Assembly (NCBI GenBank): GCA_028023455.1
Contig: JAQFVV010000008.1
Location: 12,772,001-12,836,000, forward strand
Reading direction: 5' to 3'
Length of the DNA: 64,000 bases
DNA from: Epiperipatus broadwayi
Lineage: Eukaryota > Animalia > Onychophora
The notes beneath the pieces are model-generated. The model was given only the letters and a program-made list of their open reading frames with translations. It was not told where the DNA came from and did not search any database. Position numbers and translations under genes: made by a program. Of the stretch, positions 33,565 through 61,146 are shown in pieces (the first letter of the stretch is position 1; the number at the start of each line of letters is the position of its first letter).

Positions 33565-33686
33565 CTAATAATTAAATGCTATGTCTATAAGGATTTGACT
33601 ATTGCGTTTCACTAATTCAATCTTCATGAAAATTTTTTGAAACTCATCAAATATAAAAAATGTGAACCCTCTGTATTTAAAGTAAC
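33565..33686 (-). pseudogene. Fourth, diverged copy of the GTSF1 C-terminal exon unit
   Basis: Starts GYFKYRG like the copies at 34549 and 34324. The acceptor position reads TG. The frame diverges and stops after 40 codons. Confidence 0.45.
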
Positions 33687-33807
33687 CAAACAAGATCTTT
33701 TATTTTTTTAAAAACTAAACTCATCAAGATTACTATGTACATATATATATATAATAATTAATAAAACAAGTCACAAAATGCGGAACTTGCTTAAGCTTGT
33801 ATTACAG

Positions 33808-34142
33808 ATATTCACTAGCGGGAGCTTACCAATAGCTCCAACCAAGCTTTAATTTATAAGTGCCAAAAGAGAAAGAATTTTAAATCTCTATCGGAAAGCT
33901 TCCATTCCCAGACCGATCAGTTTCGAGCTTATGGCTCACCTCAGTGAAGAGCTAGGACTTCAGACTTTTGAATTGGTATTTTGGATCTAGTGTTTGAAGT
34001 CCTAGCTCCTCACTGAGATGAGCCATAAGCTTGAAACTAATCAGTCTGGGGGTTTTCTGATAGAGACTTTAAATTCTTTCTCTTTGGAACTTATAAATTA
34101 AAGCTTGGTTGGAGCTATTGGTAAGCTCCCTTTAGTGAATAT
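33808..34142. mobile_element. Palindromic Penelope-like terminal-repeat insertion with hammerhead-like motifs in both arms
   Basis: Near-perfect ~150-bp inverted arms. 34008-34051 (+) CCTCA-CTGAGAT-GAGC(CATAA)GCTT-GAAA-C(TAATCA)G-TC-TGGGG and its counterpart 33906-33949 (-). Confidence 0.75.
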
Positions 34143-34165
34143 ATATATATATTAAATTACTTTAC

Positions 34166-34324
34166 TTTTTCCACAACCTATTGAAGAAACATTTTTATGT
34201 TCATTTGTAACAATCACTTGAGGTCTTTTCAGAGACTGAAGTTCTTCAACAAATATTTTCTCTATTTCAATAATAAATTGGGAACATTTTTTAAGTAATG
34301 AAGATCCTCTGTATTTGAAATAAT
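34166..34324 (-). pseudogene. Third copy of the GTSF1 C-terminal exon unit (open frame, acceptor AG changed to AA)
   Basis: 159 nt, same length as 34391-34549. Encodes YFKYRGSSLLKKCSQFIIEIEKIFVEELQSLKRPQVIVTNEHKNVSSIGCGK. Donor gtaaag retained; acceptor reads gtgtaa. Confidence 0.55.
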
Positions 34325-34390
34325 TTACACATTTTTTAAAAAAAAAACTAAATTCATAAAGTTTGTAATATATATATTAAATTACTTTAC

Positions 34391-34549
34391 CTCTTCCACA
34401 GCCCATTGAAAAAGCATTTTGATGTTCGCTTGCAAAAATCTTTTGAAATCTTCTTAGCGGCTGAAGTTCTTCAATAAGCATTTTCTCATTTTTAATAATG
34501 GATTCAGGAAATTTTTTAAGTAATGTGGACCCTCTGTATTTGAAATAAC
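34391..34549 (-). CDS. Candidate additional GTSF1 exon (symmetric phase 1), second copy of the C-terminal module
   Basis: tcttgcag| ... |gtaaag. Open frame GYFKYRGSTLLKKFPESIIKNEKMLIEELQPLRRFQKIFASEHQNAFSMGCGR. In phase with the donor at 34622 across a 72-nt intron. Confidence 0.55.
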
Positions 34550-34607
34550 CTGCAAGATTTATTTTTTTTTGAAAAATTAAACTCATTATGAATATAATAT
34601 ATATATA

Positions 34608-34788
34608 TTAAATGATTTTACCTCTTCCACAGCCCACTAAAGAAGCATTTTTACGTTCACTTGAAAAAATCATTTGAGATCTTCCTACAGGCTGAAGTTC
34701 TTCAACAAAACTTTTCTCATTTTTGATATATTCAGAAAAATTTTTATGTAATAGTTTTCTAACTTTTTTTCGTTCTGCTGGTTTTAAA
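34608..34788 (-). CDS. GTSF1: Candidate GTSF1 exon 3 (terminal to the stop at 34608, or spliced at 34622)
   Basis: tatag|T TTA AAA CCA (phase 2, matches the 43331 exon). LKPAERKKVRK resembles the ..P.ERR.FR segment I recall after the zinc fingers in arthropod GTSF1. Ends GCGRGKII*. The three-exon model gives 160 aa. Confidence 0.6.
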
Positions 34789-35329
34789 CTATATATATAA
34801 ATAAGCATATACATATACATAAACATAGACATATTATACATTTAACTCATTTACTCAATAATATTATTAACTCAGAAACAAAACGAGGGGTTAATTCTTA
34901 ACATGTCTACTAATAAAATAAATTTCAAATAAACTCAAAGTGTTTGAAATAAATAAGCAACAGCATACTGCAATAATATTATGTACATTGATCAATTGGT
35001 TACCTAGGCATTTCCTGCTTTCCTATCCTATCACTATAATCTAACTGCCTTATATCTCCCATTAGTTTTTAAATCACAACCCTTTCTTTCAATCTATTTT
35101 TCTTAGAAGTAAAGTATTTTTTGACAATGTATATATATTTTTTCAAACCTAAAAGCAAATATTATCTTTTTCTATACATTATATAGAAATATAATAATGA
35201 TAAATCTCAAAATGTCAATGTTATCCTATAATATTTTCTAAGCTCAAAACATTGCTAGACAAAAAAGTTGTTCAGCACTCACACCACAAATATTTTCTAG
35301 ATAAAATTTCAACAATATTTTAAGTTCAA

Positions 35330-37260: not shown

Positions 37261-38041
37261 CTTGTTTTACAGTGTGATAATATTCCATCTATGCATTCTT
37301 ATACTTACATAAATATTATTATAAGATATATTTTTTCTCTTTTGCAGGAGGAAAATCTTGATTATTGTAATATATAGATTAAACTAAAATAATGAGCATG
37401 CTAATAGCTCTACAAGCTTTATCTTAAATGCTGCAGAAGCATTTAAAATCTCTATCTAGACACTATCCCCATCAACAAACTGGTTTATTGGTTATCCTAT
37501 CATGTGATATGTGACTCATTTATATATATATATGACATAAATTTAATTAATACCAGCTATAAAATTTTTATAAACTTTTAGGCAGCAGTATTTCTGTCAA
37601 TAATCGATGTTAACAGTGGAATGAGAAAATTGTGAGATTCCAGCAAACACAAAAACACAATTTCTATTTGTTTTCAATTACAACACTCAATTTATATTAA
37701 AGTTTGAATATAATTTTAGCAGCTATTTAATTAAAGCTTCCTTCATATCAGCTTAATGTTAAAAAGCAAGGCAGACTTTTTAATCAAATATTTTTAATTA
37801 ACATATTTTAAAATTATTACAGATGTATGTAGTTTTTAATTTTATATACATAAATGTTGCATTTCTTTAATCTTCAGTTGAATCCAAAAAATATAAGCAC
37901 TGATTTAGTCAGTGGACACTAGATAGCAATGCCAAAAGACTCCAACAATAATGACGTAATATGTAGAGAAAATATTATATGTACATAATTATAAGGGGGG
38001 GGGGGGATTAAGACAGATAGATAAGTTGGTTAGAAAAAAAA

Positions 38042-38430
38042 GTGATAAGTAAAATATATAAAAAAAGGAAGCGCTATGTAAAATATATATGTTTAAAATA
38101 TAGTCTAGAATTGTTTAAAAATAAAATATGTGTAAAATATAAAGAAGAGTATGGTAATACTAGAGACAGATTATATATTGCTGAAAAAGAGCTTTATATG
38201 ATCAAGGAAAGAAGACAAAAATGGAATAAATGATTTGGATTATGAATGCAATTTATGTGGAGATAATAGGGAGAATATTGAACATTTATTTTTTGGAATA
38301 TAGGATGTTGAAAGAGAATCAGAACAGATTCCAGGAAATGGGAGAAATTTAAAAATTAAAAAAATAATTAAAAATATGTAAATCTTATAATTTTTTGATT
38401 AGATCTTTGTAATAAAAATGAAGAATATGA
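38042..38430 (+). pseudogene. 3' fragment of a LINE (C-terminal CCHC finger)
   Basis: CNLCGDNRENIEHLF remnant at ~38270-38295, preceded by YSLELFKNK-like sequence resembling the LINE at 39.1-39.3 kb. Confidence 0.6.
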
Positions 38431-38587
38431 TAGGATAGAGCAGTGTAAAAAAAAAAATAGAAAAAAAAGTTATAATTGGAATAATAATTTGATAATGAAT
38501 AAATAGTAATTGTGGATATAAAATAATTTCAGAGAGAAAATTTAATTTGGCTAATAGAGATTTTGAGCATGTCATATATACGGAAAC

Positions 38588-38648
38588 ATTACCTAAGGTG
38601 AAGTCAGTTTACGTCACTATTACCTAAGGTGAAGTCAGTTTACGTCAC
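38588..38648 (+). repeat. Exact tandem duplication with a 31-bp period
   Basis: attacctaaggtgaagtcagtttacgtcac(t) occurs twice. Each copy contains a CRE-like TACGTCA. Confidence 0.9.
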
Positions 38649-38699
38649 ACCTCCTGTATCTAGATAATTGTTTCTTTTTTCTCCGTAAACACAATTAAT

Positions 38700-41600
38700 C
38701 AAAAAAGTAATGCAAATTGATGTGATGCACTGTGACTTCTCCTTATACAGAGTCAGGAATCTTTCAGCAACTATGCCCAGAGAAATCTGTTAGCCACTTT
38801 AACTTCCCTTTCCATTCCCTGCCCTAAGTTTTCTCATATTCTTCTCTATCCTTTTCCATCCCATTGCCATAACATAATCTTTGTCAACCCCATGGCCTTT
38901 ATAGATAAATCCCCCTTTTCCCAAACCCAGCATAAAAACCAATAACATGCTTTCAGTATAATCACTTTGTTTATATTTATTCTTCCACAATTTCATTATT
39001 TGAACTCTTTCTGCTTTCAGAGATTTACATTCAATTAACAGATGCCTAATTTTTTTTATTCTTCCTTACAGAACTTGCAGACTAAATCACCCACATTTTT
39101 CCATTTATGTGTATATTTCTTTGTTACTAAAGATCCTGTTCGAGCCTTAAAAAGTAAACTACTTTCCTTGCTATTATCATAAATTAACTCGCACCCAATA
39201 TTCTGTTTACTTCTATATATATTTAAACTCTTTTTACTCTCCATACTAGTTCTCCATCTCTCCAACTCCCTATTCTTTATTAATGCATCTATTCTTCTAT
39301 CCCATTCCTTAACACTATAACACTCAACAATTCTCCTAACACAATCATCCCACCTTTTGTATAAGTATACTGACATAAATTCTTTATCCAAATCTTCTGC
39401 ATATTGCATTACCTTTCTCACCCATCTTGTTGCCTGTCCTTTATTCATAACTCAATTAAATACTATTTTGGCTATTCTTTTATTATCCATAAACTGCAAT
39501 CTACCAAACATTTTCATTTTGCTTTTTGCATCTCTCATATAAAAACTTGCCCCTCCTATTTCTCCTTTGAATTGCCTCCTTTGCTATCCACACATCTGCA
39601 TCTAATGCATGTCTTTCTACTTCTCTTTGTACTTTTTCTAAGTAATCTAATATCCCTTTACTAACACATAACACATCATTACCATATGTTAACCCTGCTA
39701 CTGCCACTCCCTTTCATACAATTCTAGCTACATCATACTTATTATATGAGAACACTGTTAATTTCTTTATCAATCCCTTTCTTTTCTTCATTTATCAATT
39801 TTTTCTCCCATTCATCCAAGCAATTTCTATGATTACTTAAGATGATTCCCAAATAGTTTTATCTATTCACCACACTTAACTTTATATTACCCAATAAAAA
39901 TTCTCTGTCTTCTCTTTCCCCAATATTAATCATCATTACTTTTGATTTTTCTTCACTAAATTTAATCTTCATCTCTTCATCCACCTTTGTGCATGTCCTC
40001 AGCATAACTTCCATATCTTCCCTTCTTTCTGCACACAAAAAGACATCCTCCTCAAATAAAAGACCTGACAATGTATATACTCCCTTGTTTCAACTATTAA
40101 TGGTATCTCTACCCAACTTCCTAGTCTTTCTATTGCTCTCTCCATTTCTCTCAAATACAACAAAAACAAAATAGGTGATATAGAGCATCTTTGCCTTAGT
40201 CCCAATCCATTTTTAACTTTAACTGATTCTATATTCCCTAGTTGATACATATAGTAATTATTTTCATATAATTTCTTAATAATATCCACTAAAGCTCCAT
40301 CCATTCCCAAATTTATTAAACTTACCCATAATCTATTTCTATTTACTCTATCATACACCTTTTCTATATCTATAAAAATCATATATAACCATCTAACCTG
40401 TATTCCTACTCAATATCCATAAGTTGTGTGACATTTCTCCCACAATATTATTTTCTTCCATCCATTTTGCAACTCTTCCAGCCACCATATATGAGAAAAC
40501 TTTATATAGCACTGATGTTACCACTATCAGTCTATAATTAACTTTCTACGATCCTTACCCTTTCCTTTAAATAGTAGCCTTACTCTTGTATTATTCCAAA
40601 CTACTCAGAAAATCTCCCTTCTGTGCCATCTTATTAAAACATGATAATAATTTTAATTTTGCCCTATGGCCCAAATTCTTTACTATCTCTGCTGCCCATC
40701 CATCCAAATCTCTTGCCTTTCCACTTTTCAATTTCTTATCTGCCTCACTCAGTTCACTTTCTGTAAACCTAATATTCTCATTAATATATGCTTTCATGTT
40801 TGCTATAACTCTGTCCTTCAGATCTAACATCTTATCTATATCCATTACATACTTATTTAAGATTATCTCTAATTTTTCTCTAGATCTACACTATTCCCTT
40901 ATTAGCTAGTAATACTATTTCTCTCTACCTACATTCTTTCTTTTAATGTATTTCCAAAATTTTTTACTCCCATGTCTTCCACTTTTTATTAATATCCTCC
41001 AACAATTGACTGATTATCTATTTTAGCCAACTTCTTTTTTTCTAAGTACTTTTCCTACTTAGCATTAACATCTTTTTCACTTTCTTTGTTCTTAATAACA
41101 CACTTATATTCTTTGGATGCTTTCCCCCTCTCTTTTATACCTTTACTAACTCTCACTTTCCTAATACTTTTATTCTTCTGAATATTTTCACCTAAAACCT
41201 TATTTGCCACTTTTTCTATTTCACCACACCAGTCCTTATACTCATCCCCAACCAACTCTTCCATGGTTTCTTCAACTTTTATTTTATACTCTTCTAACTT
41301 ATTCTTATCATTCACTCTCCATCCACATTTTTCACTATCCTTTCTACTTTTATTTCTATTTTTCATCACATTAATAACTATTTATATTATAAAGAAGTTA
41401 TGTTCACTACTACATACTCTCTCTTCATTATCAAACATCTTAATTTTCTGTACTTTATTCATTCCCTTTTTCTCTACTAATACATAATCTACTGTGTGGA
41501 ATATATTATTTTTAAACCATGTGTATTGTCCCTCATAAATATTTGAAAAATTTCCAATGCTCAAATTCACTCTCTGACAAAAATTCTTCAAAAGCTGTCC

Positions 41601-43140
41601 ATTCTTATTACCCACATTAATTTCTTCAATATGCCCATTCATATCCCCTATAACCATAATTCTCTTCTTCTTTTCTTTGAAACTCTGTATTTCCTTAACT
41701 AGGCATTCATATATGCTACTGTTCCAGTCTATTATAGTTTGACTATCTCCAGTGACTATTTACACTATAGCCACCACCCATTCTTGTCTTTCTAACTTTA
41801 TCTCAAACCACAAATGTTCTTGACATTTAACAGTATTTAAATATTTTTTTGACATAACTCCTATACCACCATTACTTTTTTTCTTTTTCTTTTCTATTTA
41901 TACTTTGCCATACCAAGTCTTCCAGAAAAGGTTTCTTCTTCTTCCCTTAGATGTGTTTCCACTACTGCTAATACCTCAAGCTCTTCATTTTTAATTGCTT
42001 TATTTAATTCCAGCCACTTTTCTGGTCTTCTACCACCTTGCATATTCAAATATCCAATTTTAACAATTTCTTCTTTCCTAACTAATCTTTTATAAATTCT
42101 TTTGACTCTTTCTTCTCCAATATCTTTATAAATAACTTGCTTACCATTAATTTTACAGATTCATTCCCTCTCCACATCTACATTTATATCTAAATAAGCT
42201 ACTCTTTGATTATTTCTTACATCCAGTCCATTCTTTTTCTTTCTGATGACACTGCCACTTAAAACCCCAATCTCTTTATAAGTTTCCTGAACTATATTTT
42301 TTATAAATCAAACTCCCTAAAACTTCACTTCCTTGTTTTTCTAAGTTCAATCCATTCTTACTATATAAATCCCTCTTTCTAATAAAAAAATCCCACACAT
42401 CCACAAACACACATAATTTTTCTCATACAATTTTTTCAATATCTCATTTATAGAACATACCCTATCTAACATATACCTCTTGTTAAATCTTGGTAATAAT
42501 CCAACTATTCCTCCTTTATTCTTACTCAAATTCCTAATCAATTCTATATACTCATCAATTATTCTCTCTGATGACTCTGACAAATTAATAATCCCTACCA
42601 TAACATACACACCTCTACTCCCTTGCTTCTTTACATTATCTGTAACATCCCTAATTCTAGCTCCAGGCAAACATACTCTTACATATTTGTTTCTATTTTC
42701 CTATATCTCTTCATTCTCTAATTAGTGAATCTCCTATCAATAGTCTCATAGTTTACTTTTTCTACTTCATCCATAACATTCTCTACCATCTTCTGAACTT
42801 CCTTATCTACTTCTTTTTTATCATTACTACTCAATAATTCTTCATCTGCTCACACTTCGTCTGTAATGATTTTAATTTTGGTTCTACATCTTTTACCTCT
42901 TCCTCCATCTTACTTATTTTTTGGCTAACCATCTCCATTGCATTACTAATTTTTCCACTCATAACTCCTGTCACTCCACTAAAACCATACTCTATCCTAT
43001 TTTCCTCAATTACTTTTTGCTCCATTTCTCCTGACTTTCTTTTTAAACTATATACGCTTAGAAACCACTTTTTCACTTCTTTTTATCACATTTACACACT
43101 TTCTACATAACCATAAACCTGTTACATCTTTCCTAGTCTT
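38700..43140 (-). mobile_element. Near full-length degraded RTEX-like LINE (esterase ORF1; APE-RT-CCHC ORF2)
   Basis: ORF1 PGARIRDV..VMVGIINL (SGNH/esterase-like, 42347-42670). APE VIGDMNGH..TW..TVDYVL..SSEH (41382-41657). RT FIDIEKVYDRV, GLRQRCSISPILF, LLFEEDV (39859-40382). LTYGNDVLC; FKARTGSL..CKFC..HLLIEC. Confidence 0.85.
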
Positions 43141-43330
43141 ATTTAAACATTTCAAGTGATAAACGTCATCACTTACAGTACACTCTACCAAAACATGCCT
43201 AATTTCTTTCTGATCTTATATATGCATTGTGGAATACAAATATGAAAAATCTATTTGCACTGCCAAATTAATGTTTACAGTAAACTATAATTACAAAATA
43301 AATAAATATAAATCAGTAAAACAATCAAAC

Positions 43331-43391
43331 CTGGTAAATATTCTACATTTTTCCAGTTTGCTTATTTTGATGTAGGGCAAAACATTCCATT
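43331..43391 (-). CDS. GTSF1: Candidate GTSF1 exon 2 (61 nt, phase 1 to 2)
   Basis: ttatatttcag| ... ccag|gtttga. Only the phase-1 frame is open, (E)WNVLPYIKISKLEKCRIFT, which is the phase exon 1 requires. Confidence 0.5.
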
Positions 43392-49173: not shown

Positions 49174-49308
49174 TAGAGAGAAAAAATAAAGCTAACTTTC
49201 ACTTGTACAATTGTTCTGAACTATCTGTGATGTTGAGATAACTATGCACATCATAATTAAACAATATATACAAACAGATACAACAAAATTAAGATTTAAA
49301 ATATATAC

Positions 49309-49549
49309 CTGAGAGAGAAAAGTCTTGTTGAATAAGAATTTTGTCAGGACAGACTGCCATATGATATCTTATTTTTAATTTTGGAATACTATGGCTTCTG
49401 TTGTATGGGCATGCTGCCATCTCAGATACATCATTATCTTCCTGGCATTTAACTAAATGATATTGCAATCTTCTATGAAAAATGACATGACAAGGATCAT
49501 AAGGACAGATTACTTTGTCTTCAGGTTTTGGTGCATTATACAAATACAT
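49309..49549 (-). CDS. GTSF1: Gametocyte-specific factor 1 (GTSF1/Asterix-like) first coding exon with two CHHC U11-48K-type zinc fingers
   Basis: C15-H21-H31-C35 (CPYDPCH..YHLVKC) and C47-H53-H63-C67 (CPYNRSH..YHMAVCPDK), both C-X5-H-X9-H-X3-C. Acceptor (t)12ag at 49557-49558, ATG at 49549, donor cag|gtatat at 49308 (phase 1). Confidence 0.9.
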
Positions 49550-56890: not shown

Positions 56891-58957
56891 TTAAGTAGGA
56901 TCTTTTGACTGTGGGTCTTGTAAGTTTTCTAAATCGTTCTCTACATTTTTATCAATAATTAGATTGATGTTAGTAAGGTAGGCATTATCTACTGACAGGT
57001 TATATTGTTCTGACCTACATGGGTTTCGATTGAGCACATCTGCTACAACATTCTCGGATCCTTTGTAAAATTGGATGGTGTAATTGAATTCCTGCAATAA
57101 CAAGCTCCACTGGATTAAATGACTGTTAGTCAAGTAGCTGTGATTCAGGAATTCGAGGCTTTTGTGATCCATGACCACTATCACTTCTGATCCAAGAAGC
57201 ATCTGTTGAAACTTTTGGAAGGCCCACACTATGGCTAGTGCCTCCTTCTCAGTGACTGTATAGTTTAATTCTGGACCTTTCAAGAGATGACTGATGAAAT
57301 AGAAGACACCAGGTTGACCATCCTCCTGGATCTGGGATAATGTTACCTCTAATCCAAAACCACTGCTGTCCGTTTGAACAATAAATGGTTTGTTAAAATC
57401 AGGGAAGGCTAAGAACCCTGTTTTAATCTTTGTAAATGCCTCATCTTGTTCACCAGTCCAGTTCCACCTTTCATCCTTTCTAATGAGTTTTAGTAATGGT
57501 TCCATGTGGTCAGAGAACTTTCGATAAAAACGATTGTAGAAATTGCACAGTCCCAAGAATGATCTAATTTGTTTTCTACTCATGGGTTTTGGGAAGTTCT
57601 GTCTGGCACTGATCTTATCTGGATGAGGTCTTATCCCATTGCATCCAATGATATGTCCTAAGACAACCACTTTGTTACATACCGTGCTTTTCTTGAAATT
57701 GATTTTAATTCCCTTCACACGGCACTCTTTAAAAAATAATCTTAGATGTTGAAGGTGTTCTTCAATAGTGGTAGATGCAATAATTACATCATCCACATAA
57801 ATTGTAATGATCTGTTTGACCTCAGTGGATAAAGTTTTATCCAAGCATCGTATAAGGCCAGCACCACTATTGATCAATCCAAAGGGCATCCTATTAAACT
57901 GATAGGTGAAACCCTCATATCGGAAGGCAGTATAGTGGTGATCATCAGGATGGAGTTTAATTTGCCAATAACTGGAGGTTAAGTCAAAGGTGGAGAATAC
58001 CTTCTTATTTCCAAACTTCACAAACAATTCGTGAATGGGTGGTGGGATGTTCCTATCAAGAACCGTAATTTTGTTCAGTTGACAAGCATCCAAACAAAAT
58101 CTCATCGACCCATCTTTCTTTTTCACAGTAACAATTGGATTACAATAAGGGGAAGAACATTTGGAAATAATTGCCCAATCTAGCATCTTATTGATTTGTT
58201 TTGTTATCTCTTCACGATATTGGTATAGTATAGGATACAATTTGGATTGAAAGGGTTGGTCATGTATAAGATTTATTCTCTGCTGGAAACCCTTTATTAT
58301 CCCTGGTATTTTTGAAAAAATAGGGTCAGATTCATTAATAACAGATCGTAATTTAATTTTGTCATCGCTTCCAAGTAAATTAGATTCTGTGATTTTAATT
58401 TCAATTAGTGCCTGTGAGATTACAGATATCATACAATCAACTTCAAAAAGACCATATCTTGGATGCAATGTCATTTCCAAAATCTCATCATTAATCCTAT
58501 TATTTGAGAAATCAAGGATAGAATGGTTCATGTGGAGGAAATCTGCCCCTAAGATAGCCTCATGTATTAAGCCATCTAATATAAAAAAGACATGATAGAG
58601 GGTTGTTTGGACAATTTTAATTTGTATCCAAATTTGTTTTTGTAATAATTTGGCTTTTCTATTATTCGCCATGGTGACTTGTGTGGATTTTAGTGGTAAA
58701 ATTTTGATATTAGGGTTATTTGTCAGAACTTTATGATAGAATGCATCTGACACCACTGATATTTGACTACCAGAATCTAATAATGCTTTAACTGGTATGT
58801 CCTCAAACAACACCTCTATCATGGGGCAACTTTGCAAAGTAAAATCAGGTGCTCTGTCCTCCCATGAATTCATTAAATTAGTGATTTCCCAGTTTTCTAT
58901 TTTATTTATGTCCCTCATCGTTTTTTCGGTTTCTTGAGGTGAGGAACATGACCCCAA
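56891..58957 (-). CDS. pol: Gypsy pol: protease, reverse transcriptase and RNase H (688-aa uninterrupted ORF)
   Basis: ALLDSGSQ; FSTFDLTSSYWQ, RMPFGL, YVDD; QTDSSGFG, EKEALAIVW, DHKSL, NVVADVLNR. Confidence 0.93.
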   Translation of the reverse strand: MGSCSSPQETEKTMRDINKIENWEITNLMNSWEDRAPDFTLQSCPMIEVLFEDIPVKALLDSGSQISVVSDAFYHKVLTNNPNIKILPLKSTQVTMANNRKAKLLQKQIWIQIKIVQTTLYHVFFILDGLIHEAILGADFLHMNHSILDFSNNRINDEILEMTLHPRYGLFEVDCMISVISQALIEIKITESNLLGSDDKIKLRSVINESDPIFSKIPGIIKGFQQRINLIHDQPFQSKLYPILYQYREEITKQINKMLDWAIISKCSSPYCNPIVTVKKKDGSMRFCLDACQLNKITVLDRNIPPPIHELFVKFGNKKVFSTFDLTSSYWQIKLHPDDHHYTAFRYEGFTYQFNRMPFGLINSGAGLIRCLDKTLSTEVKQIITIYVDDVIIASTTIEEHLQHLRLFFKECRVKGIKINFKKSTVCNKVVVLGHIIGCNGIRPHPDKISARQNFPKPMSRKQIRSFLGLCNFYNRFYRKFSDHMEPLLKLIRKDERWNWTGEQDEAFTKIKTGFLAFPDFNKPFIVQTDSSGFGLEVTLSQIQEDGQPGVFYFISHLLKGPELNYTVTEKEALAIVWAFQKFQQMLLGSEVIVVMDHKSLEFLNHSYLTNSHLIQWSLLLQEFNYTIQFYKGSENVVADVLNRNPCRSEQYNLSVDNAYLTNINLIIDKNVENDLENLQDPQSKDPT

Positions 58958-59029
58958 GTACCTTTTCAGTTTGGTTTTTGTTGTATTTTCAGTGCATGAT
59001 TACTGGTTGTAGGTTGAGATTTTTCTGGG

Positions 59030-61146
59030 CTATTGAAAGGATTCATCTTGTTTTTTTGATGTTTGATTACTCTTATTTGAGTATGTATGAGAAGGGATTA
59101 GCTGTAATGACTTCCCTTTCCAATGATTTATGTCATTATTATTCTTTCTTTTTTTATAGTAAGTAGTATTTACTGTGAGTTCTTCTTTTCTCTTTTCTGT
59201 AGTTCTTGATGATATGTTAGTATTATTTAAATCAATACTGTTAAGTAATTCTGTTACTTTTTCTATAGTATTGGTATTTGTGCATAACAATGTTTGCTCA
59301 ATTTTCCATGGTAAGTTTCTTTTAACAATATGAACAATATCACCTTCTGTTAAATGATAAGTACTTAATGTTCTAAGTTTGGTAACTTGACGTCGGAAGA
59401 ATTTAGTTAATATTTCTCCTGGAGAAGGCTTATATTTCTCTTGAAATAGTTGATAAAGTAATGTTTCTTGTTTATCCCTACTCCAAAAATTTTTAATCAA
59501 CATTATTTGGTAATCATTAAATGTGGATGGAGTTTTGAATAATGACTCCCACCATAGGAGTGCATCTCCCTGTAAATGACTATAAGCAATAATCAGTTTT
59601 TCTCCCTCAGTCAAATTCTTATTTACTGAAAAATATAAATTGAGACTCTTAAGGTGTTCTATGGGTGCTTCACTTGGTAATCCCTTAAAAACCTTGAGTC
59701 GCACAAATTGATTAATGGTATTCATCGGTGTTGTATGATTATATGGTCTATTTAGCACTGTAGAATCTATATGTGGGGTTAGCATACGTAAATCTGAATT
59801 ACTTTGATTTATGTTAGGATTAATTCCACCAAAATTATCATGAAAAAAATATTCTTAATTTTCTTGCATCATTTGATATGGAAAGATAGATTCCAATAGG
59901 GATTTGTTTGCATCATTAAGATCTCAGGTAACTGTATCTGAATTATTTTCTACATTTCTTCTATCTTTATCATCTTGGGTATTTGGGTTATATTCATTTA
60001 ATTACATTTTTGTATTTTGTGAATTTTTATGTAATTGAGATTCAACATGGATAAAATTTTGGGTAGTGGTTTTATTCAAGTGATGTATTTGATTCTGCGT
60101 TCCACTTGTGTCTTTTATAATTATTTCTAAAGCCTTTTTAGTTATAATTATATCTGCCTCATTTAAAGCCACTTTATCTCTTAGCTGCCTTAGATCTTGA
60201 TTTATGGTTTCACTAATTTCCATCCCTGTTTCTATTTCACTATTCTGTCTTATATTAAACTGATTCACTTTCACATAAATATCTTGAAATTCTTCTTGAA
60301 TCTTTTCATGGTACTTTTCTTGGTTTGTTTAGATTTCATTTTTAAAAAGTTTCCTGGCTCTGGTGCATCTCTTGATATTTGATATCTACTTGATTAGTTA
60401 CACTACAACTAAATTCTTTAAAACGTTGTTGACATTGTAAGTTTTCTTCATTCATCTCTTTTGTCACTTCATTTACTCTTTGTTTTATTTCAACATTATC
60501 TTTTTGAACCTTATTTAAATCTAATGATAATTGTTTCATTTCTTCAATTTAGTTTCCACATCTTTGATTTCTACTTGCATCTTTTCCTTAACACCATCAA
60601 TATCTTTCTAAACTCTTCTTTTATAGAAATTGTCTTCTTTTAATTTCACTTCCATATTATCCATATCAACTTTAATTACAATATTATCATTCATTCTAGC
60701 CATTTCTCCCTTCATATCAGCATTCATTTTATTCATATCAGCTTTGGTTACCATATCAGCATTCATTTTATTTATATCAGCATTCATATTATTCATATCA
60801 GCTTTGGTTACCATATCAGCTTTTAAATCCATCATCATTTGGACCAATTGAACCATATACTTATCATTACCTTGAGGTTGTACTGTTATAGCTTCAGTTA
60901 CCTTTTGTGTTTGAGGTAATATTTGATCTGTCATGTGAACTGTGAAGGATGTTCATCTTCTGCTATAGACCCCTCAGACATTAGGACTTGTAAAGATCTT
61001 TGTTCATTACTAATTGAAGTGATTTCTATTTCACTATCTTTATTGCTTAAAGATTCTTCGAAACTTTTTACTTCCATTATTATTAGCTTTTTCCCACTTC
61101 TAGTTATCATTAACAAAAAATTTCTAATGTTATATTTATAAATCAC
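59030..61146 (-). pseudogene. gag: Gypsy gag with a long coiled-coil N-terminal region, broken into several ORFs
   Basis: 59030-59785 capsid-like FKGLPSEAPIEHL..HLQGDALLWW..LPWKIE. Upstream ORFs 60002-60934 are coiled-coil-like with ADMVTK/ADMNKMN repeats. Confidence 0.75.

Follow-up and report, generated by a model that had tools for sequence, protein, structure and literature searches.

Which PIWI or Tudor protein a GTSF1 paralogue serves depends on its fast-evolving C-terminal tail; such tails bind PIWI and Vreteno via tryptophan and set PIWI specificity (PMC9385479, PMC10711660, PMC9539491). In the 64-kb stretch of Epiperipatus broadwayi DNA analyzed here (the window), a gene of this type is followed by a tandem array of exon-like units, and the question is whether this array adds modules to the tail. 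An earlier reading of the same DNA (the original prediction) had proposed that it does, with alternative splicing giving isoforms with one, two or more modules. We find that the gene is a new GTSF1 paralogue and that its array is an ordinary, lineage-specific, partly decayed intragenic duplication. Adjustable valency by alternative splicing is unproven, and beyond two modules it is contradicted by the splice sites. The array carries weight as a worked example of duplication and introduces no new mechanism.

Gene structure and family identity

The window belongs to an assembly of 5.6 Gb and is AT-rich, with a G+C content of about 25–30% along most of its length. A finger-encoding open reading frame at 49289–49549 (minus strand) specifies two N-terminal C-x5-H-x9-H-x3-C fingers. 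Exon 1 of the gene (49309–49549, minus strand; 241 nt; ATG at 49549) encodes both CHHC zinc fingers, keeps an open frame and all eight zinc ligands, and ends at a phase-1 donor. It matches Pfam family PF05253 over two stretches (E = 1.5e-16), which bears out the original assignment as a GTSF1/Asterix homologue. A search of 1.84 billion representative proteins with the exon 1 product returned 1059 family matches (best score 88 bits), the named ones being gametocyte-specific factor 1-like or protein D7-like proteins of Octopus, Haliotis, Pecten, Exaiptasia, a fly and birds. On sequence grounds, the gene is of GTSF1/Asterix type and one of two such paralogues in the genome. It resembles GTSF1/Asterix (UPF0224, U11-48K-type CHHC) in its two tandem N-terminal fingers and short, fast-evolving tail, but is only 43–52% identical to any library protein and has a lineage-specific tandem triplication. 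Because the best library identity to exon 1 is only 52%, no comparison of orthologues is possible; none of the 1.84 billion proteins exceeds this value, so no transcript-derived model of the gene is on record.

Exon 2 (43331–43391, minus strand; 61 nt; phase 1 in, phase 2 out) encodes EWNVLPYIK... between AG and GT sites that were read directly. It holds one Trp, in 'SEWN', which resembles the E-[ND]-W-D block of the family and is replaced by Gly in the paralogue. Exon 3, which is also unit 1 of the array (34622–34788, minus strand), starts with the family tail motif LKPAERKK and ends GCGR-G|GT, the donor context after GCGRG being GAG|GTAAAA; read-through past the GT adds KII before a stop at 34608–34610. 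The proposed exons 49549–49309, 43391–43331 and 34788–34622 are bounded by canonical GT/AG sites and join in frame into a model of 480 nt or 160 codons, which inclusion of unit 2 would extend to 639 nt or 213 codons. The junctions originally put forward (49309/43391, 43331/34788 and 34622/34549) are indeed all GT..AG and frame-keeping, and both codon counts hold. The tail is short, and the KGCTDVPxY and E-[ND]-W-D blocks of most long homologues are missing from it.

Two groups of retroelement sequences lie nearby. Inside intron 2, at 38000–43200 (minus strand), LINE-like reverse transcriptase (RT) fragments accompany a region in which GC skew is strongly negative, and open frames for gag and a Ty3/gypsy-type pol (protease, RT and RNase H) occur at 56894–59785 (minus strand). 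We rejected the possibility that exon 2 is a piece of the neighboring LINE-like element because a genome search found the exon to be single-copy.

A tandem array of three units

Behind the finger exon, three tandem units of about 225–231 bp occupy 34141–34790 on the minus strand. TRF places the array at 34141–34752 (period 225, 2.7 copies, 79% matches, score 710), and a profile built from the units gives three matches (E = 3e-69, 7e-59 and 6e-55) and a weak, partial fourth at 33687–33764. Pairwise identity of units 1–3 in the profile alignment is 79–81%, and invariant GAAGAACTTCAG anchors at 34703, 34472 and 34247 define periods of 231 and 225. The profile detected no further units, either upstream of 34790 or in the rest of the window, no Pfam domain was matched by the units, and DNA and protein searches of the organism's own genome showed the array to be single-copy in its 5.6 Gb. 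The idea that the units are a genome-wide repeat was rejected, the only other DNA match (contig C6287) being a short AT-rich chance match.

Units 1–3 are open in one frame and end in GCGRGKII-stop, GCGRGKVI-stop and GCGKSKVI-stop, respectively. Units 2 and 3 are each 159 nt long, run from phase 1 to phase 1, are 77% identical and end at a phase-1 GT. The open frames, the 159-nt lengths and the phase-1 GT endings had been described in the original prediction and are confirmed here, as are the states of the copied acceptors, which read CAG for unit 2, TAA for unit 3 and TTG for unit 4.

Unit 1 is separated from unit 2 by the first copy of a short candidate intron 3 (34550–34621, minus strand; 72 nt; GT..CAG), which contains an AATAAA at 34563; further AATAAA sites occur at 33704 and 33455. 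Unit 2 (34391–34549, minus strand) keeps the CAG acceptor, 53 open codons, GCGRG and the donor GAG|GTAAAG, and its GCGRG stretch matches unit 1 at 15/15 nt. Its acceptor is preceded by an A-run instead of a pyrimidine tract. The second intron copy (34325–34390, minus strand; 66 nt) retains its GT and has TAA at the homologous acceptor; an AG at 34349–34348 lies one base out of frame and an A10 run spans 34338–34347, both as originally noted. Unit 3 (34166–34324, minus strand) is open and without an acceptor, and in it GCGRG has become GCGKS and ELQP has become ELQS. An intact acceptor and donor are not found on every copy; only unit 2 has CAG..GT. All copies also retain another AG 16 nt further in (ATACAG), and the shifted frame that it opens stops after 15–26 codons.

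The third intron copy has received a foldback or MITE element (33803–34147), a 345-bp near-perfect palindrome whose inverted-repeat arms are 85–92% complementary. It is a high-copy repeat, with 5806 first-look candidates genome-wide and many full-length copies that are 75–82% identical. Beyond it, unit 4 (33565–33686, minus strand) has an open frame of 40 codons (GYFKYRGF...), closed by a TAG at 33565–33567, and is homologous to units 2 and 3 only over its first ~26 nt. The original count of four related units stands as three units and a partial fourth; the fourth, however, is better read as the original next exon (exon 4) than as a degenerate module.

One further feature of the units is a purine-rich 14-nt sequence, TTGAAGAACTTCAG (34696–34709, 34465–34478 and 34240–34253), which is identical in all three despite ~20% divergence. 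By a rough hand estimate this invariance alone is not significant (P about 0.17). The GAAGAA within it resembles an exonic splicing enhancer.

A paralogue with a single tail unit

A genome-wide search for GTSF1-type loci found only one besides that in the window, 252 kb away on the same strand (C8:13037701-13073405). Several GTSF1 paralogues per genome are also present in flies, silkworm and mouse (PMC9385479). Exon 1 of this paralogue again has 241 nt and ends in phase 1, and comparison with the window copy gives a dN/dS of 0.21/0.62 = 0.34, showing that the gene family is under selection here. Exon 2 again has 61 nt and the same phases (44/61 nt identical, no indel; tblastn E = 0.005), and exon 3, matched by unit 1 in tblastn (E = 7e-7), runs from LKPAERR to S-I-G-R-G-R-G|GTAGAG. 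These equal exon lengths and phases back the originally proposed link between the zinc-finger exon and the exon at 34.6–34.8 kb. Exon 2 is conserved between the paralogues no better than its own intron flanks, the paralogue's flanks near exon 2 matching the conservation of the exon itself, and conservation alone is therefore no proof of an exon.

Within the range searched, 60 kb downstream of its exon 1, the paralogue has a single tail unit. At 107 nt after GRG|GT comes TTAG, followed by an 83-nt open exon (GCFKY...) ending CAA|GTAAGT, and then by TTTCAG, nine codons, a stop and, 5 nt on, an AATAAA. The GRG donor of the paralogue is at C8:13038011 and the GCFKY exon starts at 13037903. The resulting five-exon model is in frame throughout (612 nt, 204 codons). 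Units 2, 3 and 4 have a GYFKYRG head with homology to the head of the GCFKY exon, and unit 4 resembles this exon 4 both at the start (GCFKY) and at the end (K-Q-N-V-S-Q). Open stretches of 40 and 28 codons occur in this DNA at background rates of about 5% and 11%, respectively. Because the paralogue has a GT at the same post-GRG site and a plausible exon behind it, the units appear to descend from an exon–intron–exon sequence. We consider it probable that the GT behind GRG is a genuine donor of long standing and that GYFKY heads an old exon 4; the exon 4 assignment is drawn from open frames, phases and signals alone.

Global alignment of the exon 4–5 regions of the two paralogues was unreliable, and comparison of 25 kb downstream of the paralogue with the window (blastn and tblastx), covering exons 5 and later, gave transposon matches only. 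A long-tailed D7-like gene was sought in this genome for the sake of its intron positions, and none was found.

Origin of the array

On the whole, we favor the view that the array arose in one of two GTSF1-type paralogues by intragenic exon–intron–exon triplication with in-frame chimeric exons. Homology between the units begins at ~34752, inside exon 3, and ends at ~33660, inside exon 4, and these limits yield exactly three copies of one segment (~34752–34522, 34521–34297 and 34296–33660, minus strand), the third enlarged by the 345-bp foldback element and ~60 nt more. The copied segment, of ~231 bp, would have run from exon 3, of which it held the 3' two-thirds, across the short intron 3 and ~26 nt into exon 4. 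Since both breakpoints would lie at compatible codon positions, each extra copy would create an in-frame chimeric exon of 159 nt, in which an exon-4 head is fused to an exon-3 tail with GCGRG, bordered by GT and AG sites copied from the intron. In unit 2, for example, exon 4 would have supplied the first 26 nt (GYFKYRGST) and the 3' part of exon 3 everything after them. The units differ from one another by 17–23%, whereas intron flanks differ between the paralogues by 28–37%; the triplication thus appears younger than the paralogue split, in agreement with the paralogue's single unit. Unequal exchange or replication slippage after that split is the most likely mechanism.

Tandem exon duplication is a general source of internal repeats or alternative exons in animal genes. 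The array conforms to this pattern, with homologous exons side by side that agree in length and phase and have copied splice sites. It differs in that the duplicated block is a half-exon, an intron and an exon head rather than a whole exon, which would account for the chimeric exons, and in that two of the three copied acceptors have already been lost. The locus offers a concrete route to tail-motif multiplication, through in-frame duplication of such a block.

Selection and drift in the tail

Over the clearly homologous 43–44 codons (Nei–Gojobori method), inter-unit dN/dS is 1.08, 1.11 and 0.88, and differences by codon position (8/8/6, 10/11/8 and 11/10/9) show no third-position excess. The original prediction had named neutral evolution of the units as something that would refute it, and at face value ratios of 0.88–1.11 are just that; however, the test is powerless, because unit 1, the exon most likely to be used, is equally unconstrained (9 non-synonymous changes and 1 synonymous change from the unit consensus). 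The whole tail drifts near neutrality, unit 1 included, and dN/dS speaks neither for nor against the use of unit 2.

Other measures describe the same drift. Changes from the three-way consensus number 10 in unit 1, 12 in unit 2 and 20 in unit 3, and derived changes at 102 well-aligned sites, with the paralogue as outgroup, number 6, 5 and 9. In protein, units 2 and 3 are nearer to the paralogue (17 and 16 matches of 34, respectively) than unit 1 (12 matches). The intron copies are 71–81% identical with 4–6 gap columns each, and the exonic parts are 77–83% identical with one 3-nt indel, which separates unit 1 from units 2–3. When the consensus was evolved neutrally in simulation, the probability of remaining open was 0.39 for unit 2 and 0.23 for unit 3, so that their open frames are only mildly unlikely.

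Splicing and predicted protein products

If the unit 1 donor and exon 4 are real, the CAG of unit 2 is the closest intact acceptor available to that donor, at a distance of 72 nt. As no in-frame partner is left for the unit 2 donor, splicing would by default yield a 213-aa protein with two modules that ends GCGRGKVI. Reading into the intron would give a 160-aa form ending GCGRGKII, with the 213-aa form perhaps made in addition by splicing unit 1 to unit 2. We give roughly even chances to the presence of unit 2 in a sizeable share of mRNAs. As read from the assembly, three or more modules are excluded with canonical in-frame sites, unless two acceptor sites are misassembled. Of the isoforms originally proposed, those with one or two modules remain plausible and those with more than two do not, since units 3 and 4 are without an in-frame canonical acceptor; the gene would have at most a choice between 160 and 213 aa, with no graded series.

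Alternatively, exon 3 may always have been the last coding exon, which we regard as unlikely. The GT would then belong to a GGT codon, ~100 nt of 3' flank would have been duplicated along with the end of the exon, and units 2–4 would lie beyond the poly(A) site, outside any mRNA and open by chance; the protein would have 160 aa and the remainder would be untranscribed flank. The AATAAA at 34563, 45 nt past the unit 1 stop, suits this reading, but the ~110 nt between the read-through stop and the TTAG acceptor of the paralogue contain neither AATAAA nor ATTAAA. The residues G-K/R-V/I-I after GRG are conserved between the paralogues, and the last GxGRG falls within 20 aa of the end in 18/65 motif-bearing homologues; against these stands the complete in-phase series of AG, open frame, GTAAGT, AG, stop and AATAAA downstream in the paralogue. 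Open frames arising by chance would agree with the neutral look of unit evolution and with the probability that both units 2 and 3 stay open (0.39 × 0.23), yet exon-4-like frames are open in a compatible phase in both paralogues, at backgrounds of about 5% and 11%, and the junction of every extra copy is in frame.

A second alternative is that selection has kept a regulated, alternatively spliced series of one, two or more GRG modules for Tudor or PIWI partners. The equal length and phase of units 2 and 3, the three kept donors and the unit 2 acceptor would be in keeping with such adjustable valency, as would the status of GxGRG as a real and often multi-copy family motif. We nevertheless consider it improbable: unit 3 and exon 4 have no in-frame AG, GRG has been lost from unit 3, the units show no sign of purifying selection and the paralogue manages with one unit. 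Also improbable is that the window copy is a decaying paralogue whose tail, and perhaps the whole gene, has lost its function, with the array as debris of a dying 3' end. In favor of this, evolution of the tail exons roughly keeps pace with that of the introns around them, non-synonymous changes in unit 1 outnumber synonymous ones by 9 to 1, the exon 4 acceptor is gone and the W of exon 2 is absent from the paralogue. Against it, exon 1 is intact in its ATG, eight zinc ligands and open frame (dN/dS 0.34 against the paralogue), every canonical splice site of exons 1–3 is preserved and fast-evolving tails are normal among GTSF1 paralogues (PMC9385479).

A GxGRG motif across GTSF1-type tails

The more interesting by-product of the analysis is a family-wide motif, G-x-G-R-G. 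With tail-motif patterns that were defined after the data had been seen, we found it in 60/131 homologue tails, whereas shuffles that preserve composition gave 1.9 ± 1.4. The family mostly has R, L, I or V at position x, as opposed to Cys in the window, and hydrophobic residues tend to precede the motif. Most tails that have both motifs carry a TP[AS][EQ][KR][KR]-type motif upstream of GxGRG. The original prediction had presented a tail of tunable valency as not known for this family, but two to four separate GxGRG motifs are present in 28 of the 150 best homologues (out of 1059): multi-copy GRG tails are a family habit, as fixed sequence.

Within the window, on the gene's strand, G-x-G-R-G occurs only in unit 1 (34622–34640) and unit 2 (34391–34409), and the open frame of unit 1 is the sole one of 1934 window fragments with both tail motifs, LKPAERKK and then GCGRG. 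This is also their order in the long-tailed 'protein D7-like' or 'gametocyte-specific factor 1-like' relatives, such as those of Haliotis (XP_046367391) and Pecten (XP_033726596), in which TP[AS]E[KR][KR] is followed by one to four hydrophobic-GxGRG motifs. There the repeated motifs are fixed in a protein of 300–500 aa, whereas in the window the second copy stands in a separate, recently duplicated candidate exon. BLASTP of the 131 homologue tails against all window open frames gave no significant match to the units, and the tail similarity is therefore at the level of short motifs only.

Arginine-methylation sites of the RG/GRG type dock Tudor domains in the piRNA pathway, for instance at PIWI N termini, and the units resemble them in that a short GRG motif lies in a disordered part of a protein of this pathway. 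They differ in that the known contact between a GTSF tail and a Tudor protein, that of Bombyx Gtsf1L with the eTudor domain of Vreteno, uses a Trp motif and a hydrophobic pocket and no methyl-arginine (PMC10711660). In the literature searched, we found no study of the GxGRG motif, no link between GTSF1 and RG/GRG motifs, and no report of methylation or Tudor binding of GxGRG. Quite tentatively, hydrophobic-GxGRG may be a conserved docking motif, perhaps for methyl-arginine and Tudor or for contact with RNA, and the locus may have caught the birth of a spliceable extra copy; if so, the species would produce one- and two-motif forms of GTSF1.

Octopus sinensis XP_029657875.2 (101 aa) is 98% identical to a 321-aa Octopus homologue over residues 1–80 and unrelated to it thereafter, and the two gene models cease to be alike at the same phase-1 exon-1 boundary, after residue 80, as is found in the window gene. 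This suggests an Octopus GTSF1-like gene with two different 3' ends, as isoforms or as differing gene models.
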